Source of the DNA: Paramoeba atlantica
Lineage: Eukaryota; Protista; Discosea
NCBI GenBank assembly: GCA_977017575.1
Contig: CDRNVI010000216.1
Location: 1-11,468, forward strand
DNA: 11,468 bases
Reading direction: 5' to 3'
Below are positions 1 through 11,468 of this stretch, one piece after another. Position 1 is the stretch's first letter; the number at the start of each line of letters is the position of its first letter. The notes beneath the pieces were generated by a model. That model was not told the origin of the DNA, searched no databases, and worked only from the letters and a program-made list of their open reading frames with translations. The translations under genes and the position numbers were made by a program.

Positions 1-54
1 TCTCTTTTCTCTTCCTCCTCTCTTTTTCTCCTTTTCTTTTTCCAACACACACAG

Positions 55-138
55 CCTTGATAGCAATAAAATTGGAGATGAAGGAGCGAGAGAGATTGGT
101 AAGTCCCTCTCAACAAATGCAACACTTCAAACACTTGA
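55..138 (+). CDS. 84-nt exon encoding one RI-type (NLRC3-like) leucine-rich repeat
   Basis: Acceptor ...ccaacacacacAG at 53-54 follows a polypyrimidine tract; donor GT at 139. Phase 2/2. Translation: LDSNKIGDEGAREIGKSLSTNATLQTL, a 28-aa LRR period. Confidence 0.9.
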
Positions 139-393
139 GTTTTGCTTTCATTTTGTTTTCTCTCTTTATTTCTGAATATTGTGTTTTTGTCTCTTTTTTC
201 TTTTTTTCTCTTTTCTCATTCTTTTTTCTCTCTTCTTTTCTTCTCTTCTTCTCTTTTCTCTTTTCTTCTCTTTTCTTCTTCTCTTTCTTCTTCTCTTTCT
301 CTTCTCTCTCTCTCTTCTCTCTTCTTTCTTTCCCTCTCTCCTCTTTTCTCTTCCTCCTCTCTTTTTCTCCTTTTCTTTTTCCAACACACACAG

Positions 394-477
394 CCTTTTT
401 AACAATAAAATTGGAGATGAAGGAGCGAGAGAGATTGGTAAGTCCCTCTCAACAAATGCAACACTTCAAACACTTCA
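394..477 (+). CDS. 84-nt exon encoding one RI-type leucine-rich repeat
   Basis: Acceptor AG at 392-393, donor GT at 478, phase 2/2. Translation: LFNNKIGDEGAREIGKSLSTNATLQTL. Confidence 0.9.
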
Positions 478-708
478 GTTTTGCTTTCATTTTGTTTTCT
501 CTCTTTATTTCTGAATATTGTGGTTTTTGTCTCTTTTTTCTTTTTTTCTCTTTTCTCATTCTTTTTTCTCTCTTCTTTTCTTCTTTCTCTTTTCTTCTTC
601 TTCTCTCTCTTCTTCTCTCTTCTTCTCTCTCTCTCTCTCTTTCTTTTTTCTTTTTTCTTTTTTCTTTCCTTTTTTTTCTTTTCTCTTTATTAATTTCTTT
701 ATTGACAG

Positions 709-781
709 TGTTGATGACAATCCTTTTTGCCGTTCTCACCCACAATTGATGAAGGATATTCAAAGTCTACTCACTCCAGAG
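709..781 (+). CDS. Linker exon capping the LRR array (HVDDNPFCRSHPQLMKDIQSLLTPE)
   Basis: Acceptor attgacAG at 707-708 and donor GT at 782. It starts in phase 2, matching the LRR exons, and ends in phase 0, matching the exon at 949. xDDNP resembles a terminal LRR turn. Confidence 0.7.
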
Positions 782-948
782 GTTTTCAATTTGAAAAATT
801 TTTATCAAAGAAAAACACATCCCATCCAACAACACACAAATTCAAAAACAAAAGACAATGAAAATATAAGAAAACAAAAGAAAACAAAAGAAGAAAATCA
901 AAAAGAAATAATTTTTTTTTTTTTGTTTTCTCAAATATCTTTTTGTAG

Positions 949-1360
949 AGAATATTTCAGAAACAAGTTGAAGCTGCTGAGCAGGGGAATGGAAATGCAC
1001 AGTATAATGTAGGGCGGCGGTATGAGAATGGCGGTAAGGGTGTAGATAAAGATGAGGAGAAGGCATTTGAATGGTATTGTAAGGCTGCTGAGCAGGGGAA
1101 TGGAAATGCACAGTATAATGTAGGGCGGCGGTATGAGAATGGCGGTAAGGGTGTAGCTAAAGATGAGAAGAAGGCTTTTGAATGGTATCGTAAGGCTGCT
1201 GAGCAGGGAAATGCAAGGGCGCAATATGACTTAAGCTTGATGTATCAGAATGGTGGCAAAGGTGCAGCCAAGCAGCAAGATTGGAGTGCTGCACTTAAAT
1301 GGTGTCAGTTGAGTGCAAAAGCAGACTATGGGTTAGCAAAGGGTCAATTACGTCAATGGC
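949..1360 (+). CDS. SEL1-like repeats (3 plus a capping helix), missed by the ORF track
   Basis: The frame is open from the acceptor TAG at 946-948. It reads RIFQKQVE AAEQGNGNAQYNVGRRYENGGKGVDKDEEKAFEWYCK AAEQGNGNAQYNVGRRYENGGKGVAKDEKKAFEWYRK AAEQGNARAQYDLSLMYQNGGKG, matching the SEL1 consensus AAEQG..AQ..LG..Y..G.GV..D..KA..WY.K. Units start at 973, 1084 and 1195 (111-nt period). An alternative acceptor at 960 keeps the same phase. Confidence 0.92.
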
Positions 1361-2212
1361 AAAAACAGATAATCAAATTAGTGAGTGTTTCACCACAAGA
1401 TAGTCCCTGGCAGCAGCAGAGGTTGAAAGCACTTCCTCCTCCTGCTGGATGGGTGAAGAAAAAAGAGAGTATTATTGCTGAGGAGGAAGGGAGATCTGGT
1501 GGTGGTGGGGTTAGTTTTGATGTGTCTGACAGCAGTAGTAGTAGTGGAGGATACTACAGCAGTGGAGGTGATGTTGAAACAGCAGTAATTGAAGCAGAAA
1601 ATTTGGGATTGGGTTCTTCTTCTAATGCATCTGGCCAGTTGCAAGCTTCATTAAGCGCACATCAATTAATCTGTTTATTGGGGTCACAGTATGGTGAACT
1701 TATTGAGTGTGTCAAAGCATTAGGGGGGGTGAGGGGGGGTGAGGGGGGGCAAAGTGTTGATGGTGATGGTGGTGCTGCCAATCTCCCCCCCCCCATTGTT
1801 GCAAGTGGATACTCACAGTGCAGCCTTGGCAGAGCTCTATGGCTTAGTGAAGCAGTCTATCAATTTAGATGTTCATGTTTACAGTGCATTGATAAAGGTC
1901 TTAGAATATTGTGTGCCAGTGTATCAATTGCAGCAGCAGCAGCAGCAGCGAGCAGCAACAACAACAACAACAACAGGGTGTGATGATAAGGTTGAGAATG
2001 AGGCTCTTTTTTTGCCATCATCACGTTTAAAGCATGCAGCCTTGTTAGTGCAACAAGCTATTGATGTAGTAGGACATGCCCATTGGTTGCTGCGTCATCA
2101 AGTGTTGGGGAAGTTGCATATATTGGAAGATGAATATGCCACAGCCATCAGCAGCAGCAGCAGCAGCAGTGATTGTGCCAGTGTTGCTGTGTTGGGTGAA
2201 GGGTATTACAGC

Positions 2213-3620
2213 TTACCAGTTACTGTTGCACGTCAGTTATTGTGTGTGAATGAAACTGGAAAGGAAGTCAAAACGAATCAAGCAGGGTCTCATGCTGTGG
2301 CAGCTTTAAATGGGGTGCATTATAAGCCTAACAGCAAAGCAGAGTCTCCCATTAATCCTGGGAAAGAAGCTGCTGTTAGCAGTTTAATGCAGTTAATTGC
2401 GGGTCAATTCTTAGCAGCAGCTCCCAGTACATTATTGAGTGTGAGTGGAGTGTCTATTCAAAAAAAAGGTGAAGAAGAGGAGAAATGTATTGTGACAACA
2501 ATGGCTGGTAACTTGGTACAAGGTGGGTTAACAATTACTGGGATGTGCTTTAAAGACTTCATTGAGTGCCGTGAAGCGCTTAGGGTGTGGGAATCACGGT
2601 TATCAATGGATGCCATGGTTGCTTTGTTGCAGAATGTTCAAGAAGATTTTGTTCATGCCTTGACGGTGGCAAAACAACAGTACCCAGATGTATTTGATGT
2701 ATTTGATTTAAGTGTTGAGGCAAACCGAACAGCTTTGAGTGAGGGGTTACGCCATGCTTTTGAGCAGGTATGTGCAGGTAAAGCAGTTGAGGTGCAATTG
2801 TGATATTGCCAATTCTTCTGACAGGCCCGAGGCCAATCGCCGCAATGCCTTTCGTGGATTGTTTGAAAGTTTCTTGCGTGATGGCGGTGGCATGGTGGAT
2901 GGTTTATGTGCACTGTTAGGGGTGATCTGTCAATACCCCATATTGATGGCAAGGCAAGAGATTGCTGGGTTGTTACAACAATTCAAACATTCCAAACGAT
3001 TATTTAAGTTGTTCCCTAACACACCATTAGAAACAGCATTAACAATCATGCCACAGTTATTAACAAAGCATTACTTGGACACTGAAGCAATGAGTTTCCT
3101 GTGGTTAGGGTTATTGCTCACTCTACCTTGTGACAGCAAGTTTGATAATTTCATGTTGCAGTTAGACTATGATACAAATAAGCAATTGAAACACTGTCGA
3201 ATTGTGGCGATTGACAATGATTTGAGTTTGAAGATGCTGTTTAGTCTTAATGAGCATGGAAAGTTATCACTTGAGCTAAAAAACTTGCTGCTGGTGTTGC
3301 CTGAGTTGATGGATTTGCCAATATGCCCGATTGTACGGAAGCACTGTTTATCACTGTCATCTGAGGGATGGTATTTGACGTGGCTTAGTTTGCTTGCTAA
3401 GCATGATAGTGATTATCAGCAGTGGTTGCAACAAGGTACAGTTAGTGTAAAAGCACTGCAAGCCATTGATATTCCAGTTCAGTTACCACAACAAGTTTGG
3501 TTATTTATCAAAGCACAGTAGTGTTTGTTACACAATATCTTGCAAACCAATGCTGATATCACCTTAGGGCAGTGTTTTGCACATCTTTATCCATTGGTTG
3601 ACAGTGCTTATCAAGGATTA
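2213..3620 (+). CDS. Atypical protein-kinase-like domain 1 (long insert; broken by a frameshift and a TAG)
   Basis: Motifs: HYK (Lys 2324), NPGKE (Glu 2366), catalytic-loop-like DSKFDN (3132-3149) and IDND (3210-3221). It aligns by eye to domain 2. Confidence 0.75.
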
Positions 3621-3944
3621 AGCCAACTGGATAGCCTGTTGCTGCCTGGTCCATTAGCAACGGAATTTAATCTGTACCAATTCTTTAAAATGGGTGGCAG
3701 TTGCCCAATAGAAAGGTTATTGAAAGAATGGCCAGTTGAATTAGAACAAGGGCAGTGTGCAGATGATACAAGCCCAATGGTCAGTGCCACTTCTCAGGTG
3801 ATGAGCGAGGTGAGGCAATTGAATTGGGCATTGATACCACAACATCAGCAATGGCCAGTGGTTGAAGCATTGTCATTGTTACCAGGGTTAACCGATTGGC
3901 AAGGTGTTACTGAAGAGGATATCAAGCCACATTTTCAAGGGCGG

Positions 3945-5180
3945 TTTCGTGAGGCTGTCACACAGGGTCGTCCCTTTGTGGCACAACGGTTATTGGACTT
4001 AGGTGCACAAGTCAGCCTCCCAGATGAAAGTCAAAACACAGCCTTGCATCAATTGTGTGCAAGTTATTTGAATTGCCCAGAAGACGGCAAGACAGGTCTC
4101 AATATCTCTTTTCTTATTTTTTTTCTTATTAATTTTTTATATTATCTAAATGAGAGTCACAAATCATGGAGAATAATGAATATTTCTGATATTTTGAGGT
4201 TGTTAAAAACTTGAGAGTGGTGTAGTGAGAGTTGTGTGTTTGTGTGAATTCTTTTTTTTTTTCTTTTTTTTTTTTATTTGTTTTATGTTCTTCAAGATTT
4301 TATGGAATGGAGTTTAATATGATGAGGTATTTTGAAGGATGCAATTACTGATTGTTTATTTTTATTTTTTTTTCTTTTTTTTTTTTTTCCTTTTTTTTTT
4401 TTCCTTTTTTTTTTTCTTTTTTATTATTATTTGTTTATGTTCTTCAAGATTTTATGGAATGGAGTTTTATATAATGAGGTATTTTGAAGGGTCTAATTAC
4501 TGAATGTTTATTTTTATTCTTTTTTTTTTTCTTTTCTTTTTTCTTTTTCTTTTTCTTTTTTTTTTTTTTAAAAAATTTGTTGTGTTTCTTCAAAAGATTT
4601 TGAAAGGGGATATGAGATGTTAATAATAATAAAAAAGTATTTGTTCAAAGGTTTTTTTTGATTGATTGGGTTTTTTTTGTTTTGTTTTATTATTATTTAT
4701 TATTATTATTTTCTTTTTCTGTTCTTCTTTCAATATTTTTAAACTATTGATTTTTTCGAAAGTGTGTGTGGTGTTCCACTTTGTGACATTGTTTCTTATG
4801 AATTCTTTTTTAATTTTTCTTTTTTTTTCCCCTCTTATTACTCTTTTTTAATTTTTCTTTTTTCTTTTTCTGATCAGCTATGTTTATGGGTTATGTGTTA
4901 TTGGGTCATCATACATGCCAACCCAACCAATACAATGCATCTGGCTATACACCATTATTGCAGTGGGTGAATGTAACACCGGAGCCAGAACAACTAACAC
5001 CAGCACAATTGGACAGTGCATTGAAATTACTAGAAGCTTTGATAATGTATGGAGCAAACCTTGAAGCCAAAGATGCATTTAAGCATGAGACAGCATTAGA
5101 TAAGACAATGAAACAGGGTCGAGAGAAGTGGCACTGGTTTGGAGTGTTAATCAAGAAAGGGGCTGGGGTGCATGCTAATG
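3945..5180 (+). CDS. Ankyrin repeats, split by intron 4096-4877
   Basis: AVTQGRPFVAQRLLDLGAQVSLPDESQNTALHQLC; NASGYTPLL; LLEALIMYGANLEAKDAFKHETALD; VLIKKGAGVHA. These show the typical TPLH/TALH and LL..GA.v motifs. Confidence 0.8.
4096..4877 (+). other. 782-nt AT-rich GT-AG intron
   Basis: gacaG|GTctc ... polypyrimidine tract tgatcAG|ctatg. The phase-1 join gives DGKT-A-MFMGYV and restores the frame into ORF 4880-5521. Composition changes sharply at both ends. Confidence 0.75.
4275..4517. repeat. Imperfect ~90-nt direct repeat (period ~152 nt) inside the intron
   Basis: ttcaagattttatggaatggagttt...atgaggtattttgaagg...aattactga occurs at ~4275-4365 and ~4429-4517, with a decayed third trace at ~4575-4610. 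Confidence 0.85.
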
Positions 5181-5428
5181 GTGAAATGATTGTTAAGCAT
5201 GCCTACAATGAGTTGAGGAGGAGGAGGGCATTAGCCCAGCAGCAGCAGCAACAGCAGCCAACATTGCAAGTGATATTATCACAGTTAGCTGAGCGTAACT
5301 TGAGTGTGGCCTGGGGATTGAGTCAACAGGTATGGCAGCAGCAGCAGGAAGCCAGCAGTGGCAAGCAGCAGCAGAGCAAAAAATTTACTGTGGTTGTGGT
5401 GCATGGTAGTCACTGTGGCAATGTGGTG

Positions 5429-6423
5429 TTACCAGAAATGATAGCCAAGCAATTGTTAACAGGGAAAAGAGTGTTTATACACAAGGTGAGACCACAGAAG
5501 TATATGGTCAGCGGGTGGTGAAAGCAATTCAACACAATCAAGCCAACTGGCATGTCAAAGAGAACCCAGAGATGCCAGGGGTTGAAATGGCGGTGGGGGC
5601 ATTGAGTAAGTTGTTATTTGGTGAACACACTGCACCCAATGAAGTGTTTTCATTTTTTGATGCCAAAGGTGCTTCCTATCCAGTACTGATTTCACAGACA
5701 GTGGCAGGGGAGAACTTACAAACAGTATTAAATGGTGATAAGAAGAAAAGACAGGTTGGTGCTACCTTACGCCAGTTGCACCCACAATACACTTGTGAGC
5801 AAATCCTGTTAGCAATGTTAGTACACCCAGAAGATGGTAAACCAGATAACTATCAATTATTGCCAGTGACAACCACAAACTGCTCCCCCTGCCCCCCCTC
5901 CAAATTTGGCAAATCATCATCATCAGCAGCAGTCATACAGCAGTATCGGATTGTGGGGGTTGACAATGATCATGCATTTGTGAAACCAGTGATTATGGAA
6001 AAAGGCCATCGCAAATTGCAAGTCAAATGTGTGTTATTTTGTTTGGACAACATGCGGCAGCCAGTCCATCCAGCAGTAAGACAACGCTTGCTTCACCTTG
6101 ATCCAGTTGCATTCTTAGAAAGTTGGTTAGACCAGTTAATAGCCTATCATGAATGCTCAATGAGCTTATTTGATAAGAAAGCACGTCAACAGTTGTTTAA
6201 AGTGAAAGTGGATTTGAAACAGTTAGCCCACAAAGTGGCCCTCCGTGAAGCGCGTGAGCGCTTGCCAGTGGTGGTGACAGTGCCATTTCGTGATGGGGCA
6301 ATAACTGAGCTATGGGATTGGTTGGTGCGGTTGCAACAGGTGCTACGTGATAATCCAATGATAACCCACTTGCAGTTATTAAAAAAAATCACTTCAGCAT
6401 TGGGGATTGTGTATGATGAAGTG
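5429..6423 (+). CDS. Atypical protein-kinase-like domain 2
   Basis: Motifs: HVK (Lys 5557), MPGVE (Glu 5584), LAMLVHPEDGKPDNY (Asp 5833, Asn 5848; compare DLKPEN of Ser/Thr kinases) and IVGVDNDHAF (Asp 5962, the DFG position). Confidence 0.82.
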
Positions 6424-6849
6424 TTTGAGGTGTATGAAGAGCCAGAAGAAGTGGCTGCGCGGTTTCATGAGGTGGCTAACACCCATTACTCCACAGCAAT
6501 AGCTGGGCGTTATGCAACACTCACCACCAGTCGCCAAGCCTTGCAAGCAGCTGGGTTCTCAGACAAAGACCAAAAGGTGTTGTTAGAAGACAGTGATAAG
6601 GGAGCAGCAAGTTTTACTCCACAGTGCGCATTGATGCAATTACGTCAAGGGGTAGAGCAGAAAGCAAACTTGTTAGCATGTGTGGCAGCGTTAGCCGATG
6701 GCAATGGATCAGCATTTCAGAAAATATTATCTGAGCAGGCCAAAGAAGATGTGGTTAATCGTTTGGACTTTGGCAAGATGTTATTAGTGGGCGGCAGCAA
6801 GCAACCAGATGAGGCAAAACAAAAGGCAATATTAAAACTGGTTATCACT

Positions 6850-7400
6850 GAACAAATTGCATTTCACACATTGACAATTCATCATTGTGCAGTATTGACA
6901 GATGAGACTCTCACAGCATTACTGAAAAATGCTCCAGAGCTCAGTCGTTTGACATTGGTAGATTGTCCACAACTCACCAGTAAGTTGAGTGGAGTGCTTG
7001 AAAAGCACACACCATATCTGACAACATTGACACTGCGACAGTTACCCAAGTTAGAAGGATTAGGTAATCAAACCAAAGGAAAAGCAAATCAACCTACTGT
7101 CCATTATAACCCAATTAATCTGTCACACTTACGATGGGTGAATGTCAGTGATAATCTTCAATTAAGTAGCATTACTATTCAATCACAAGTATTGATGTTG
7201 GCAACCTGCAAGCACAACCCAATCCTCACGAAATTGACATTGTTTTGTGAAGAGCTAAAGGCATTAGATGTGAGTGGTTGTTTGCAATTGAGTGATAATG
7301 ACTTACACCAAACATTTGAGTTCTATCAAATGCTGCCAAAACTGAACATAGATAAATGTCAAGCAATTAATGCTGAGTTGTGGCAGTGTATGGGTTATAT
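6850..7400 (+). CDS. Cysteine-containing (AMN1/FBXL-type) leucine-rich repeats
   Basis: LTIHHCAVLTDETL, LSRLTLVDCPQLT, LTTLTLRQLPKL, LKALDVSGCLQLSDNDL, LPKLNIDKCQAIN. Confidence 0.8.
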
Positions 7401-7458
7401 CACTCAACGAACAGGATCACATTTTCCAAATTGGAATCTGAAAATGTGAAAACAATCT

Positions 7459-7800
7459 GTGTTACCATTGTTGCCATATGCATCAGATACATTTGTGCAA
7501 CTGGATATGGAGGCAATTGAATCAAATCAAGTGGGAATAATGATGAAATTGGTAGCATCTAATCCGAATGTACACACCATATTCATGACTTTGTCACCAA
7601 AGAATATTGCTGCTGCACTGACACAACTGCTAATCTTATTGCAAACCAATCACAACATTGCGGCATTGTGTATTACTGGAGTGTTGTTGGACACTGTGAT
7701 GGTTGAACAAGTGATAACAGTCCTTGCACAATGTGAAAACATACACACAGTGGCATTGATAGTTGATAACATCCAATTAGCAATTGAACAGTTTCAACAA
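7459..7800 (+). CDS. Degenerate RI-like LRRs in frame after the TGA at 7447
   Basis: LVASNPNVHTI, LLQTNHNIAALCI and VLAQCENIHTVAL recur at ~28-aa spacing. Confidence 0.45.
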
Positions 7801-8266
7801 GTAACACTCCAAAAACAGCAGCAGTTAACACAACAGGTGATGGTAAATGGGGTAAATATTACACCATTATTATTGCAAGAAAAAGGTCACACTCCAAAAT
7901 TTATATTACCAATCATTCCTGTTGATATCTCCAAGGAGGAACAAGCAATGAAGGTGGATGTGCTTGCTTTAGCCATTATGCAACATGATGATGTGTTATC
8001 CCCTCTACACCAATCAGCAGTGAATATGTTAGAATTATTCAGTGCGAGTGGGGAATTGTCAAAACACAAACAACAAGTTGCTCGTCTATTATCTGGTAAA
8101 AATCCAACCCTGTTAACTGTGCAACAAGCGCAAAGCAGCCTCTGAATTAATAATACCACACACACATCCTCTTCAAACACTATAAAAATCAAAGTTTTCA
8201 TGAGTGGGCAAAGTAATATTCCTTTTGGTTTCTTCTCACTCTCAAAGAGGAGGACATATGTCTGAG

Positions 8267-8750: not shown

Positions 8751-9753
8751 ATGGGACAAAGAATTATTCCTCAAGCTCAATTAGCAACTTTGGTTCTCTT
8801 TTTCTTTTTCTTTTTCTTTTCATTTTTCATTCTCTCTTTCTTTTCTCTCTTCTTCCCAAAAATATGTTAACAATTCCCAATTCCATATACATAGTGTCGA
8901 AGAACTGTGTGTGGAGGAGAGATTTCTTCAGATCTTGTGGAAATTATCAGAAATCAATTATTGATTATAGTTGGGCAATATGTTGAGAGAGTGAAACTCA
9001 TTTCACTGGAATGGCAGGCAACAAAAAGGTGGCTCAACTTTCCTTCCAACACACACACACACTGTTTGATTCGAAAAAAATCTGATATCTCATTTACACT
9101 TCAATATTCACAAACTCTCCAAACACTCTTTTACTTTCACTATTCTTCTTTCTTTGTCTGAAAGAGGTAAAAAAGAAAAATTGTCCATCAATGTGTGGTA
9201 TGAATCAACTTCAGTCTCTTTTTCCTTCTCTCTCTACCACTCCTCCAACCCCCCCTTCTCATCCTCTCTAACTCTTCAAGATTGAATTTTCTTTTGATGT
9301 TGTTATCTTTTCCATTCTTGTCTTGGGTTTTTTTTTCTTTTTCTTTTTTTTTATATTTTTTTTTCTTTTTTTTTTCTTTTTTCTTTCTTTTTATATTTCT
9401 CTTTTCTTTTTTCTCTTTTCTCTGTTTTCTTCTCTTTTTTCTTTTCTCTTCTTTTTCTTCTTATTGATTGATTTTTTTTTTTTTTTGTTTTGTTTTTTTG
9501 GAATTCTCTTTTCTGTAAAGTCCCTTTTCCCTTTTATTTATATTTTTATTTCTCTTTTTTTCTCTTTTCCTTTCTCACCTTTTCCTCTCCTCTTTAGGAA
9601 ATTCCTCTTGTTTTGATTTTCTAACTCTAAGGACTTTATTTTCTGGAGATGCAATGGGTTTGGACAACAAAAGAGGTGTTGTTTCTTTAACAAAAAAAAA
9701 TTGGGAAGAGTGTGTTCCTTCTCTTTTTCTTTTACACAACATCCCATTACTTG
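8751..9753 (+). CDS. Putative second spliced gene of unknown function (exons 8751-8792, 8895-9028, 9165-9213, 9281-9326, 9598-9753; 3' part unresolved)
   Basis: Five non-T-rich islands join through GT-AG introns in consistent phases (0, 2, 0, 1) with no stop. Translation: MGQRIIPQAQLATLCRRTVCGGEISSDLVEIIRNQLLIIVGQYVERVKLISLEWQATKRGKKEKLSINVWYESTSIEFSFDVVIFSILVLGNSSCFDFLTLRTLFSGDAMGLDNKRGVVSLTKKNWEECVPSLFLLHNIPLL. There is no firm homology call. Confidence 0.35.
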
Positions 9754-10524
9754 GTTTTTTTATTTTTTTATTTTTTATTTATTTATTTATTTATTAAGAT
9801 TTTAATCACAACTTGAAATTTGATTTAAATTTTTGATTTTATTTATTATTTAAAAATTTTACTCTGTAATTTTTGGTATTGTTTTTTGTTTAGCACTTCT
9901 CTCTCTTTCTTATTCTAAATAAGTAATAGTAGAATTCCACAAAATGACTTCACACACCTTTGCATTGCAATGAAAGAATTTTTTTAAGAGAAAGAAATTG
10001 TTTTGGATCATAGTTTATTTGTTTATTTGTGATTAATGCCAAGAGGATTGATGTTTGCAAGTGTTTGGAAAAGGGAAAGAAGAGAGAAAGAGAAGACAAC
10101 ATCAATTTTTACTTGGTTTTTTATTTTTTATTTTCTTTCTTTCTCTTTTTCAGATGAGTTGAGCGTCTCTTTTTACTAAAACTATTAATGCCAAGTTTTC
10201 GAAAGGAGCGTCTTGGTGGGAAAAGCAGCTCTCTTTTTTTTTTTTGTTGGAATTTTGATATTGTTGATGTGCTTCAACACACAAAGGATTGTGATGACTT
10301 CTCTCTATCTTGTGGGGTGATGTTGAATTTTACATATTGCTTTTGTTGGATATCTTGTGGGGTGGGGTATTAGAGTGTTGGTGGTTTCCCACACATTTTG
10401 TTTTCATGTTTGTTTTCCTTTGTTCTCTTCCCCTTTTCCCTTCCTCTCCTTCCTTCCTTTTTAACACTAATCTTTTCTCTTTTCTCTCCAGAGTTTTTCT
10501 CTCTCTTTGTGTGTTTGTTGGGGT

Positions 10525-11468
10525 TTTAGGGTTTAGGGTTTAGGGTTTAGGGTTTAGGGTTTAGGGTTTAGGGTTTAGGGTTTAGGGTTTAGGGTTTAGG
10601 GTTTAGGGTTTAGGGTTTAGGGTTTAGGGTTTAGGGTTTAGGGTTTAGGGTTTAGGGTTTAGGGTTTAGGGTTTAGGGTTTAGGGTTTAGGGTTTAGGGT
10701 TTAGGGTTTAGGGTTTAGGGTTTAGGGTTTAGGGTTTAGGGTTTAGGGTTTAGGGTTTAGGGTTTAGGGTTTAGGGTTTAGGGTTTAGGGTTTAGGGTTT
10801 AGGGTTTAGGGTTTAGGGTTTAGGGTTTAGGGTTTAGGGTTTAGGGTTTAGGGTTTAGGGTTTAGGGTTTAGGGTTTAGGGTTTAGGGTTTAGGGTTTAG
10901 GGTTTAGGGTTTAGGGTTTAGGGTTTAGGGTTTAGGGTTTAGGGTTTAGGGTTTAGGGTTTAGGGTTTAGGGTTTAGGGTTTAGGGTTTAGGGTTTAGGG
11001 TTTAGGGTTTAGGGTTTAGGGTTTAGGGTTTAGGGTTTAGGGTTTAGGGTTTAGGGTTTAGGGTTTAGGGTTTAGGGTTTAGGGTTTAGGGTTTAGGGTT
11101 TAGGGTTTAGGGTTTAGGGTTTAGGGTTTAGGGTTTAGGGTTTAGGGTTTAGGGTTTAGGGTTTAGGGTTTAGGGTTTAGGGTTTAGGGTTTAGGGTTTA
11201 GGGTTTAGGGTTTAGGGTTTAGGGTTTAGGGTTTAGGGTTTAGGGTTTAGGGTTTAGGGTTTAGGGTTTAGGGTTTAGGGTTTAGGGTTTAGGGTTTAGG
11301 GTTTAGGGTTTAGGGTTTAGGGTTTAGGGTTTAGGGTTTAGGGTTTAGGGTTTAGGGTTTAGGGTTTAGGGTTTAGGGTTTAGGGTTTAGGGTTTAGGGT
11401 TTAGGGTTTAGGGTTTAGGGTTTAGGGTTTAGGGTTTAGGGTTTAGGGTTTAGGGTTTAGGGTTTAGG
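10525..11468 (+). repeat. Telomeric array (TTTAGGG)n, 134 full units plus TTTAGG
   Basis: Perfect 7-nt periodicity runs to the end of the window. The G-rich strand points toward the end, as expected for a right chromosome end. Confidence 0.98.

Follow-up and report, generated by a model that had tools for sequence, protein, structure and literature searches.

Two kinase-like domains in a probable relic of a giant bacterial gene near a telomere of the Paramoeba atlantica assembly

Are two related kinase-like segments close to a telomere in a protist assembly two enzymes of the host, and if they are not, what are they and where did they come from? The question is raised by contig C216 (CDRNVI010000216.1) of the 45.7-Mb Paramoeba atlantica assembly GCA_977017575.1, whose entire 11,468 bp we analysed and refer to as the window. 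A sequence-only reading had recognized two homologous atypical kinases between positions 2213 and 6423. Its account of the protein-kinase-like (PKL) nature of the segments, their residues, their structural neighbors and the age of their duplication was upheld, but its view of them as two separate kinases was not. According to alignments with intact relatives, the segments are two domains, D1 and D2, of a single gene relic, which is broken by two in-frame stops, a 790-nt insert, frame changes and a 5' truncation. We consider it probable that positions 955–8190 are what remains of a giant gene acquired horizontally from a lineage of intracellular gammaproteobacterial symbionts, that this copy is dead, and that the intact gene specified a double kinase.

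The gene relic, its lesions and its chromosomal setting

Open pieces in alternating frames extend along the plus strand of the window from about 950 to 8145. By tblastn, the relic (955–8190) is colinear with residues 340–2406 of an intact 2,548-aa protein (L018) of the gammaproteobacterial metagenome-assembled genome (MAG) OZ220716.1, in which WD40 repeats (residues 30–313) and Sel1 repeats (from residue 353) are followed by D1, ankyrin repeats (Ank), D2 and a leucine-rich-repeat (LRR)-like tail. At the nucleotide level, blastn aligned the window with two intact OZ220716.1 genes, from a size class of 2,350–2,560 codons, at 75–77% identity over 2024–4081 and 4886–8129 (to 7276 for one of them), and the D2 protein of the window was 85% identical to that of L018. 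The coding-like DNA has a G+C content of 41–45%, versus 26–35% in the flanks and in 4082–4885, a T/C-rich stretch of low complexity. All nine pairs of motifs listed in the sequence-only reading were found where it had placed them, and codons 3132 and 5833 do encode the catalytic-loop Asp of PCDSKFDNF and PEDGKPDNY. The motifs span different frames and one in-frame stop: D1 is read in frame 2 up to 2800 and then in frame 3, with a TAG at 3519, and D2 has LPEMIAKQLL in frame 2 and runs in frame 1 from 5479. Every search, fold prediction and dN/dS count was made on a single uninterrupted piece of the gene, dN/dS being estimated piece by piece.

The first 6 kb of a 48-kb contig of the assembly (C109; loci L080 and L002) are 99.7% identical to OZ220716.1, which marks this contig as bacterial, and the two differ by nothing but single-base indels, 17 in all and most of them in homopolymers. 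Symbiont contigs and indel errors are thus both present in the assembly and bear on every frameshift called in it, and because of the indel errors the single-base frame changes alone are weak evidence of decay. Both stop codons are substitutions, a type of difference absent from the comparison of C109 with OZ220716.1. C109 had been a candidate second host copy, implying several independent transfers, and this was withdrawn because the contig is bacterial DNA. Very short GT-AG introns (19–27 nt) in place of the frame changes and stops were dropped, since the frames of intact relatives run straight across them, and a ciliate-type genetic code was dropped on the same comparison.

The part encoding the WD40 repeats is missing, and the window aligns with L018 only from residue 340 onward. 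A paralogue of positions 1–3615, with 86–90% identity that includes the upstream LRR units, lies on contig C197 and carries six further stops. Since the TAG inside D1 is common to both copies, it predates their duplication between chromosome ends. The two copies differ from each other at a dN/dS of 0.37–0.99. With two stops, the insert, the truncation and the 2-nt gap, disabling lesions are combined with relaxed selection, and on the sequence as assembled we regard the locus as a pseudogene. Both active sites are still legible, as would be expected because the decay is recent.

The relic ends 2.3 kb from a telomere of the host type. TTTAGGG is the sole telomere repeat of the assembly, with 4,652 overlapping matches to (TTTAGGG)5 and none to a six-unit TTAGGG array. 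An element of about 110 nt (10408–10520) lies just inside the array and is 81–86% conserved, in the same position, on more than 10 contigs of the assembly, and the 3' flank (9275–10520) is 90% identical to contig C235. Within the gene, the insert of about 790 nt (804 nt in the window versus about 20 nt in the continuous bacterial sequence) is made of T-rich repeats that occur at more than 100 places in the assembly. Telomere, common subtelomeric elements, host-repeat insert and C197 paralogue place the gene physically within host DNA in the assembly sequence. The housekeeping genes of the assembled eukaryote resemble those of prokinetoplastids most closely, and its type II phosphatidylinositol 4-kinase (PI4KII) is 53–57% identical to PhF-6 and PhM-4 sequences.

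Ahead of the relic, window 1–750 consists of two near-identical units, each comprising a short LRR-coding piece (57–140, 396–478, NKIGDEGAREIGKSLSTNATLQTLE) and about 250 nt of C/T-rich low-complexity DNA; these units also precede the C197 paralogue, at 86% identity. At the start of the bacterial-type segment, a Sel1-repeat unit of about 108 nt is duplicated in tandem (1013–1200).

Table 1. Positions of the gene relic, its domains, active-site motifs and lesions in the window
Feature	Position	Strand	Remarks
Relic of giant bacterial-type gene: Sel1, D1 kinase-like, Ank, D2 kinase-like, LRR-like tail	955–8190	+	tblastn with L018, L019 and P0001; blastn
Sel1-repeat region	955–1722	+	Frame 1; preceding WD40 part of the bacterial genes missing
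Frame change 1 to 2	1722–1796	+	Stretch of long G and C runs
D1 kinase-like domain, insert of ~130 aa between lobes	2213–3620	+	N-lobe 2213–2460 in frame 2, C-lobe 3021–3620 in frame 3; A1 HMM
D1 Lys and Glu	2324–2368	+	HYK codon 2324–2326; PGKE codon 2366–2368
Frame change 2 to 3	2798–2802	+	2-nt gap private to the window; not in C197, L018 or L007
D1 catalytic loop D-S-K-F-D-N	3132–3149	+	D313, K315, D317 and N318 conserved
D1 D-N-D, equivalent of DFG	3213–3221	+	D340, N341 and D342 conserved
In-frame TAG inside D1	3519–3521	+	Sense codon in intact relatives; same TAG in C197 paralogue
T-rich insert	4082–4885	+	Breaks an ankyrin repeat; ~20 nt there in bacterial genes
D2 kinase-like domain	5423–6423	+	First strand 5423–5476 in frame 2, remainder 5479–6423 in frame 1; AF2 (AlphaFold2), Foldseek, VIA-align
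Frame change 2 to 1	5476–5479	+	Start of D2
D2 Lys and Glu	5557–5586	+	HVK codon 5557–5559, K27 of the model; PGVE codon 5584–5586, E36 of the model
D2 catalytic loop D-G-K-P-D-N	5833–5850	+	D119 to N124 of the model; paired by hhalign with RNTDRGxDNW of PI4KII
D2 D-N-D	5962–5970	+	162–164 of the model; paired with IDNG of PI4KII
In-frame TGA, LRR-like tail	7447–7449	+	Sense codon in L019 and L007; homology continues to ~8190
Host chromosome end	10408–11468	+	Telomere-adjacent element 10408–10520, then ~135 TTTAGGG copies

Probable bacterial ancestry and the family of double-domain proteins

In a tree of 22 D2 domains, the window fell into a clade (98/96) with four OZ220716.1 paralogues, nested among other bacterial sequences, and the family occupies 48 bacterial loci in the scan described below. 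A single ENA sample (ERZ24900291) yielded both OZ220716.1 and the close relatives P0001 and P0004. Compared with every sampled bacterial paralogue, the window has a dS of about 1 and a dN/dS of 0.08–0.23, and the bacterial paralogues compare alike among themselves. Because dS is near 1 to all of them, the actual donor copy is unsampled; and because dN/dS to the bacterial genes is so low, most of the divergence would have accrued under selection.

Nuclear insertions of symbiont DNA have precedents, such as the Wolbachia fragments in arthropod and nematode genomes, and there, as here, a symbiont gene in a host nucleus decays without selection. Unlike those insertions, the present one has a protist host with prokinetoplastid-like housekeeping genes and a subtelomeric site, and by the time the copy spread from one chromosome end to another it already contained a stop.

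Two further observations were made on contigs with host-type DNA. Locus L007 (ENA ERZ24900291 ctg3066l, 5001–12431) encodes the intact 2,476-aa protein P0001, with the order D1-D1-D2, no WD40 part and no interruptions; its contig is linear and 17.9 kb long, with AT-richer flanks that contain the same host-type repeats and an ATG8-like open reading frame (ORF). P0001 compares with the bacterial genes at a dN/dS of 0.12–0.15 and may be a live, host-encoded copy. On the paralogue-bearing contig, C197:1–2021 (within C197:1–2889, loci L081 and L092) is 100% identical to OZ220716.1 (G001:1217136–1219156), where this element with a DUF2924 ORF is repeated. The 2,021-bp bacterial stretch adjoins about 124 copies of CCCTAAA (2022–2889), followed by host subtelomere with the degraded kinase gene. 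The junction reflects either a chimeric contig or a chromosome end that took up symbiont DNA very recently.

The gene belongs to a large family. An exhaustive search of 1.84 billion representative proteins returned 835 relatives (clusters at 50% identity) at E<=1e-3, 439 of them at E<=1e-10. Most are 1,500–3,000 aa long and match in two stretches. Among 152 proteins that were fetched, at least 51 had a full D1-type domain upstream of a D2-type domain, the spacer between them having a median length of 335 aa; in most of the others the upstream match was partial or split. The modules on either side differ between members (Ank, TPR, HEAT, WD40, TIR, Sel1), and the duplicated pair, as judged from these matches, is a constant feature of the family. 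Neither Pfam (2025), NCBIfam (2026) nor the PDB sequences matched the family, and a literature search found no description of one like it. PI3_PI4_kinase was the sole recurring weak Pfam match (3/101 members).

Carriers were sought by a scan in which a single genome stood for each prokaryotic species and whose reach was set by its search pattern. All named genomes among its 48 loci are bacterial: the MAG OZ220716.1 and other Gammaproteobacteria, Chlamydiae, Dependentiae, Paracaedibacteraceae (including Ca. Paracaedibacter symbiosus strain PRA9), Holosporales and other Alphaproteobacteria. No named Legionella genome with the family appeared within the reach of that pattern. Several of the carrier lineages live inside protists. 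The 2.45-Mb chromosome of OZ220716.1 has 8 intact family genes, with open frames of 2,346–3,357 aa, as well as a gene for the type IVB secretion component DotI/IcmL (E 3e-52). A Dependentiae genome of 1.1 Mb has at least 10 family genes.

Homology, fold and active sites of D1 and D2

The alignment of the two domains, which the sequence-only reading had drawn from paired motifs, exceeds chance. BLASTP of the D1 C-lobe (window:2739–3518) against D2 gave an E-value of 5e-6, and the N-lobe gave 2e-3. The hidden Markov model (HMM) of alignment A1, which consists of 101 D2-type domains only, matched three D1 pieces colinearly (profile 6–70, E 2e-5; 86–221, E 5e-18; 254–285, weak). A jackhmmer profile from an intact D1 recovered D2 domains as an N-lobe and a C-lobe, D1 being about 130 residues longer between them. 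Because the tandem of D1-type and D2-type domains recurs among relatives in Gammaproteobacteria, Chlamydiae, Dependentiae and Paracaedibacteraceae, the duplication is old, as had been supposed.

AlphaFold2 with A1 gave a model of D2 (window:5479–6423) with a pLDDT of 92.3 and a pTM of 0.90; a single-sequence prediction reached a pLDDT of 35 and was unusable. The D2 model displays the bilobal PKL fold, with a beta-rich N-lobe including the alphaC helix and a helical C-lobe, and by its homology D1 should adopt the same fold. A Foldseek comparison, proposed earlier as the check on the fold, identified D2 as protein-kinase-like: 266 PDB chains matched at E<=1e-3, and all those listed are kinases. 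The top matches were human PI4KII-alpha and PI4KII-beta (E 5e-6 to 1e-4, TM 0.43–0.51), with canonical protein kinases below them (TM 0.23–0.32). VIA-align, searching 48,161 chains, likewise ranked PI4KII-alpha best (Z 16.4; 242 residues, 4.0 A), followed by CotH (12.6), actin-fragmin kinase (12.3), ATM/Tel1 (11.6), CtkA (11.5), PI4KIII-beta (11.1), Vps34 (10.6), Fam20 (10.2), MavQ (10.2) and HipA (9.1). All matches with Z>=8 (35/35) were kinases or kinase-like enzymes. The kinship with type II PI4K, actin-fragmin kinase, CtkA and HipA that had been suggested from the motif layout thus reappeared among the structural neighbors. At the sequence level, PDB searches with single pieces and with the family profile returned no match, and Pfam and NCBIfam scans assigned neither domain to a family; the window pieces had no Pfam match.

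In the D2 model, K27 ends strand 22–28 and E36 lies in the following helix (33–47); the loop D119–N124 comes after helix 102–115, and D162-N163-D164 directly after strand 152–160. The beta3 Lys, alphaC Glu, catalytic Asp and Asn, and metal-binding Asp therefore occur in the order and at the secondary-structure positions of an ATP site, and the modelled layout is the canonical one of kinases. Across the 101 D2-type domains, D119 is invariant and K27, E36, N124, D162, N163 and D164 are each at least 90% conserved. The 52 D1-type domains are similarly uniform: K50 (51/52), E64 (52/52), D313 (52/52), K315 (51/52), D317 (49/52), N318 (52/52), D340 (52/52), N341 (48/52) and D342 (51/52). Even the decayed copy in the window retains 31/33 of the strongly conserved family positions in D2 and 22/22 in D1. 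The catalytic residues (Lys, Glu, DxKxDN, DND) are kept in both domains, as the sequence-only reading had noted, and from this conservation catalytic competence seems likely for both domain types throughout the family. Each would comprise a full site for ATP phosphotransfer: the beta3 Lys with the alphaC Glu, a D-x-K-x-D-N loop, and a metal-binding D-N-D motif in the place of DFG.

PI4KII (human alpha and beta; PDB 4PLA, 4HND and 4WTV; PF00454) is the best structural match by both Foldseek and VIA-align. The correspondence is colinear, NPEDGKPDNY falling on RNTDRGxDNW and IDNDHAF on IDNGLAF, and a C-terminal helix aligns as well. The differences are considerable: the loop has G-K where PI4KII has R-G, and DND where it has DNG; identity is 12–14%, the window has no PF00454 match, and the domains are paired in tandem inside bacterial repeat proteins of 2,000–3,000 aa. 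Against the host's own type II PI4K (C7, 425 aa), A1 gave an hhalign E-value of 0.01. In A2, a 35-member PI4KII alignment built from that host protein, the blocks GSSGSYF and FKPxxEEPYG are invariant; they have no counterpart in A1, which has in common with it only the D..DN and IDN cores of two further invariant blocks, NTDRGxDN and IDNGLxFP. The best of the three PF00454 matches among the 101 relatives was E 0.0042. The family is related to PI4KII distantly, by structure, and is not a part of it. Nor does it belong to Pkinase: the HRD, DFG and APE motifs and the Pfam model are not matched, and the D-x-K-x-x-N spacing alone is in common.

Other kinases resemble D2 less closely. CotH (5JDA), actin-fragmin kinase (1CJA), CtkA (3AKJ), HipA (5K98) and Fam20 have the same bilobal fold (Z 9–12.6) and differ in standing 4–7 Z units under PI4KII and in giving no sequence match, apart from a weak hit of the CotH Pfam model to 1/101 members. 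The Legionella phosphoinositide-kinase effectors MavQ (Z 10.2) and LepB are, like the proteins considered here, atypical kinases of bacteria inside host cells, and LepB_N weakly matched 1/101 members. A predicted Legionella kinase, Lmor_1975, has an insert of about 150 aa between its lobes (PMC9758233). D1 also carries a large insert between N- and C-lobe, and by this analogy, drawn from the published description, the two may be related. Unlike the family described here, MavQ, LepB and Lmor_1975 have none of them been described as a tandem pair.

Possible function and competing explanations

In the intact bacterial protein, two diverged kinase-like domains would be held in one chain, separated by Ank and flanked by WD40/Sel1 and LRR-like modules. 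D1, with its insert of about 130 aa, and the compact D2 would both be active kinases that the bacterium delivers into the host cell, where the repeat modules would target the two phosphotransferase domains; D1 and D2 may even act as a two-step pair. Once in the host, the gene would have lost its 5' end and gained a stop codon. It would then have been copied to a second subtelomere, that of C197, and the copies would have drifted nearly neutrally since.

Some points weigh against this account. The donor copy is unsampled, so the direction of transfer is taken from the nesting in the tree. Two of the frame changes are of the 1-nt type and may be assembly artefacts, and lesions and embedding alike are read from the assembly sequence. 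The structural model covers D2, while the fold of D1 is deduced from homology, and the hhalign comparison of A1 with A2 was marginal (E 0.0028, probability 11%). If the frame changes are put down to assembly errors and 4082–4885 is taken as an intron, the locus becomes a live host gene for an LRR-Sel1-kinase-Ank-kinase-LRR protein made by the protist. Indel errors are indeed documented in this assembly, all family-conserved residues are kept, dN/dS relative to the bacterial genes is low, and the same sample has yielded the intact 2,476-aa P0001 on a protist-like contig. We nevertheless hold this to be very improbable: the two in-frame stops are substitutions, one of them common to C197, and the gap at 2800 is of 2 nt; the 790-nt stretch, built of host repeats scattered over the genome, has a poor donor site; the 5' WD40 part and an evident start are lacking; and the host copies diverge at a dN/dS of 0.4–1.0, with six more stops in C197. 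A mis-assembly, in which bacterial DNA was joined to a host telomere, is less credible still. Bacterial DNA does occur in the assembly, in C109 with its 99.7% identity to OZ220716.1 and in C197:1–2021, which is 100% identical and adjoins a telomere array. A mis-join would give such near-identity, whereas the gene is at most 75–77% identical to the genes of that bacterium; moreover, host repeats interrupt it, host sequence lies on both sides, and a diverged host paralogue exists. A dead copy of a symbiont gene thus remains the reading that we prefer.

As for the substrate, the earlier statement that its class (protein or lipid) cannot be read from sequence still applies, as the pointers divide between both. 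We lean slightly toward a phosphoinositide or other lipid, because of the nearest fold, the weak matches to PI3_PI4_kinase (3/101) and LepB_N (1/101), and the known use of phosphoinositide kinases by intracellular bacteria. That the domains of the intact family are protein Ser/Thr kinases is a serious contender, to which we give somewhat less than an even chance. D-L-K-P-E-N is the loop of eukaryotic Ser/Thr kinases, and the likeness of DxKxDN to it, pointed out in the sequence-only reading, is borne out by the spacing: the Lys stands two residues past the catalytic Asp, where PI4KII has D-R-G-x-D-N. CotH, actin-fragmin kinase, CtkA, HipA and the PIKKs, all of them protein kinases, match at Z 9–12.6, and the modules around the domains (WD40, Ank, LRR, TPR, HEAT) bind proteins. 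On the other side, a lipid kinase leads the structural matches by 4 Z units, the recurring weak Pfam match is PI3_PI4_kinase, and one member touches LepB_N. It is also conceivable, if improbable, that one or both domains are not phosphotransferases, serving as a scaffolding pseudokinase or catalyzing AMPylation or glutamylation as in SelO or SidJ; atypical kinase folds of effectors have repeatedly proved to do other chemistry. Pseudokinases usually lose some of the catalytic-site residues, while here the Lys, Glu, catalytic Asp, Asn and metal-binding Asp stand in canonical order and position in both domain types and family-wide.

The locus itself is a fossil, yet it points to an 835-cluster family whose giant proteins carry a pair of kinase-like domains that appear to be active. 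The family is multiplied in the reduced genomes of intracellular bacteria (8 genes in the 2.4 Mb of the gammaproteobacterium, at least 10 in the 1.1 Mb of the Dependentiae genome). Because reduced genomes rarely keep 7-kb genes without strong need, members of the family make good candidates for enzymes that manipulate the host, with phosphoinositides as a possible substrate. The locus would also record a transfer of DNA from symbiont to protist nucleus at a telomere and its subsequent spread between chromosome ends. A bolder proposal, which we find unlikely as a whole, is that the tandem of PI4KII-like domains marks a class of double-kinase effectors not described before and present in many copies in the intracellular bacteria of protists, that this host lineage keeps capturing symbiont DNA at its chromosome ends, and that P0001 has possibly been put to host use.

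Two features of the host assembly were noted in passing. On contigs C12, C48, C88 and C90, identical HSP90 genes with open frames of 737 aa recur in long tandem arrays with a period of 2.6 kb. Most single-copy genes were found on two contigs, and the eukaryotic assembly appears to hold both haplotypes.

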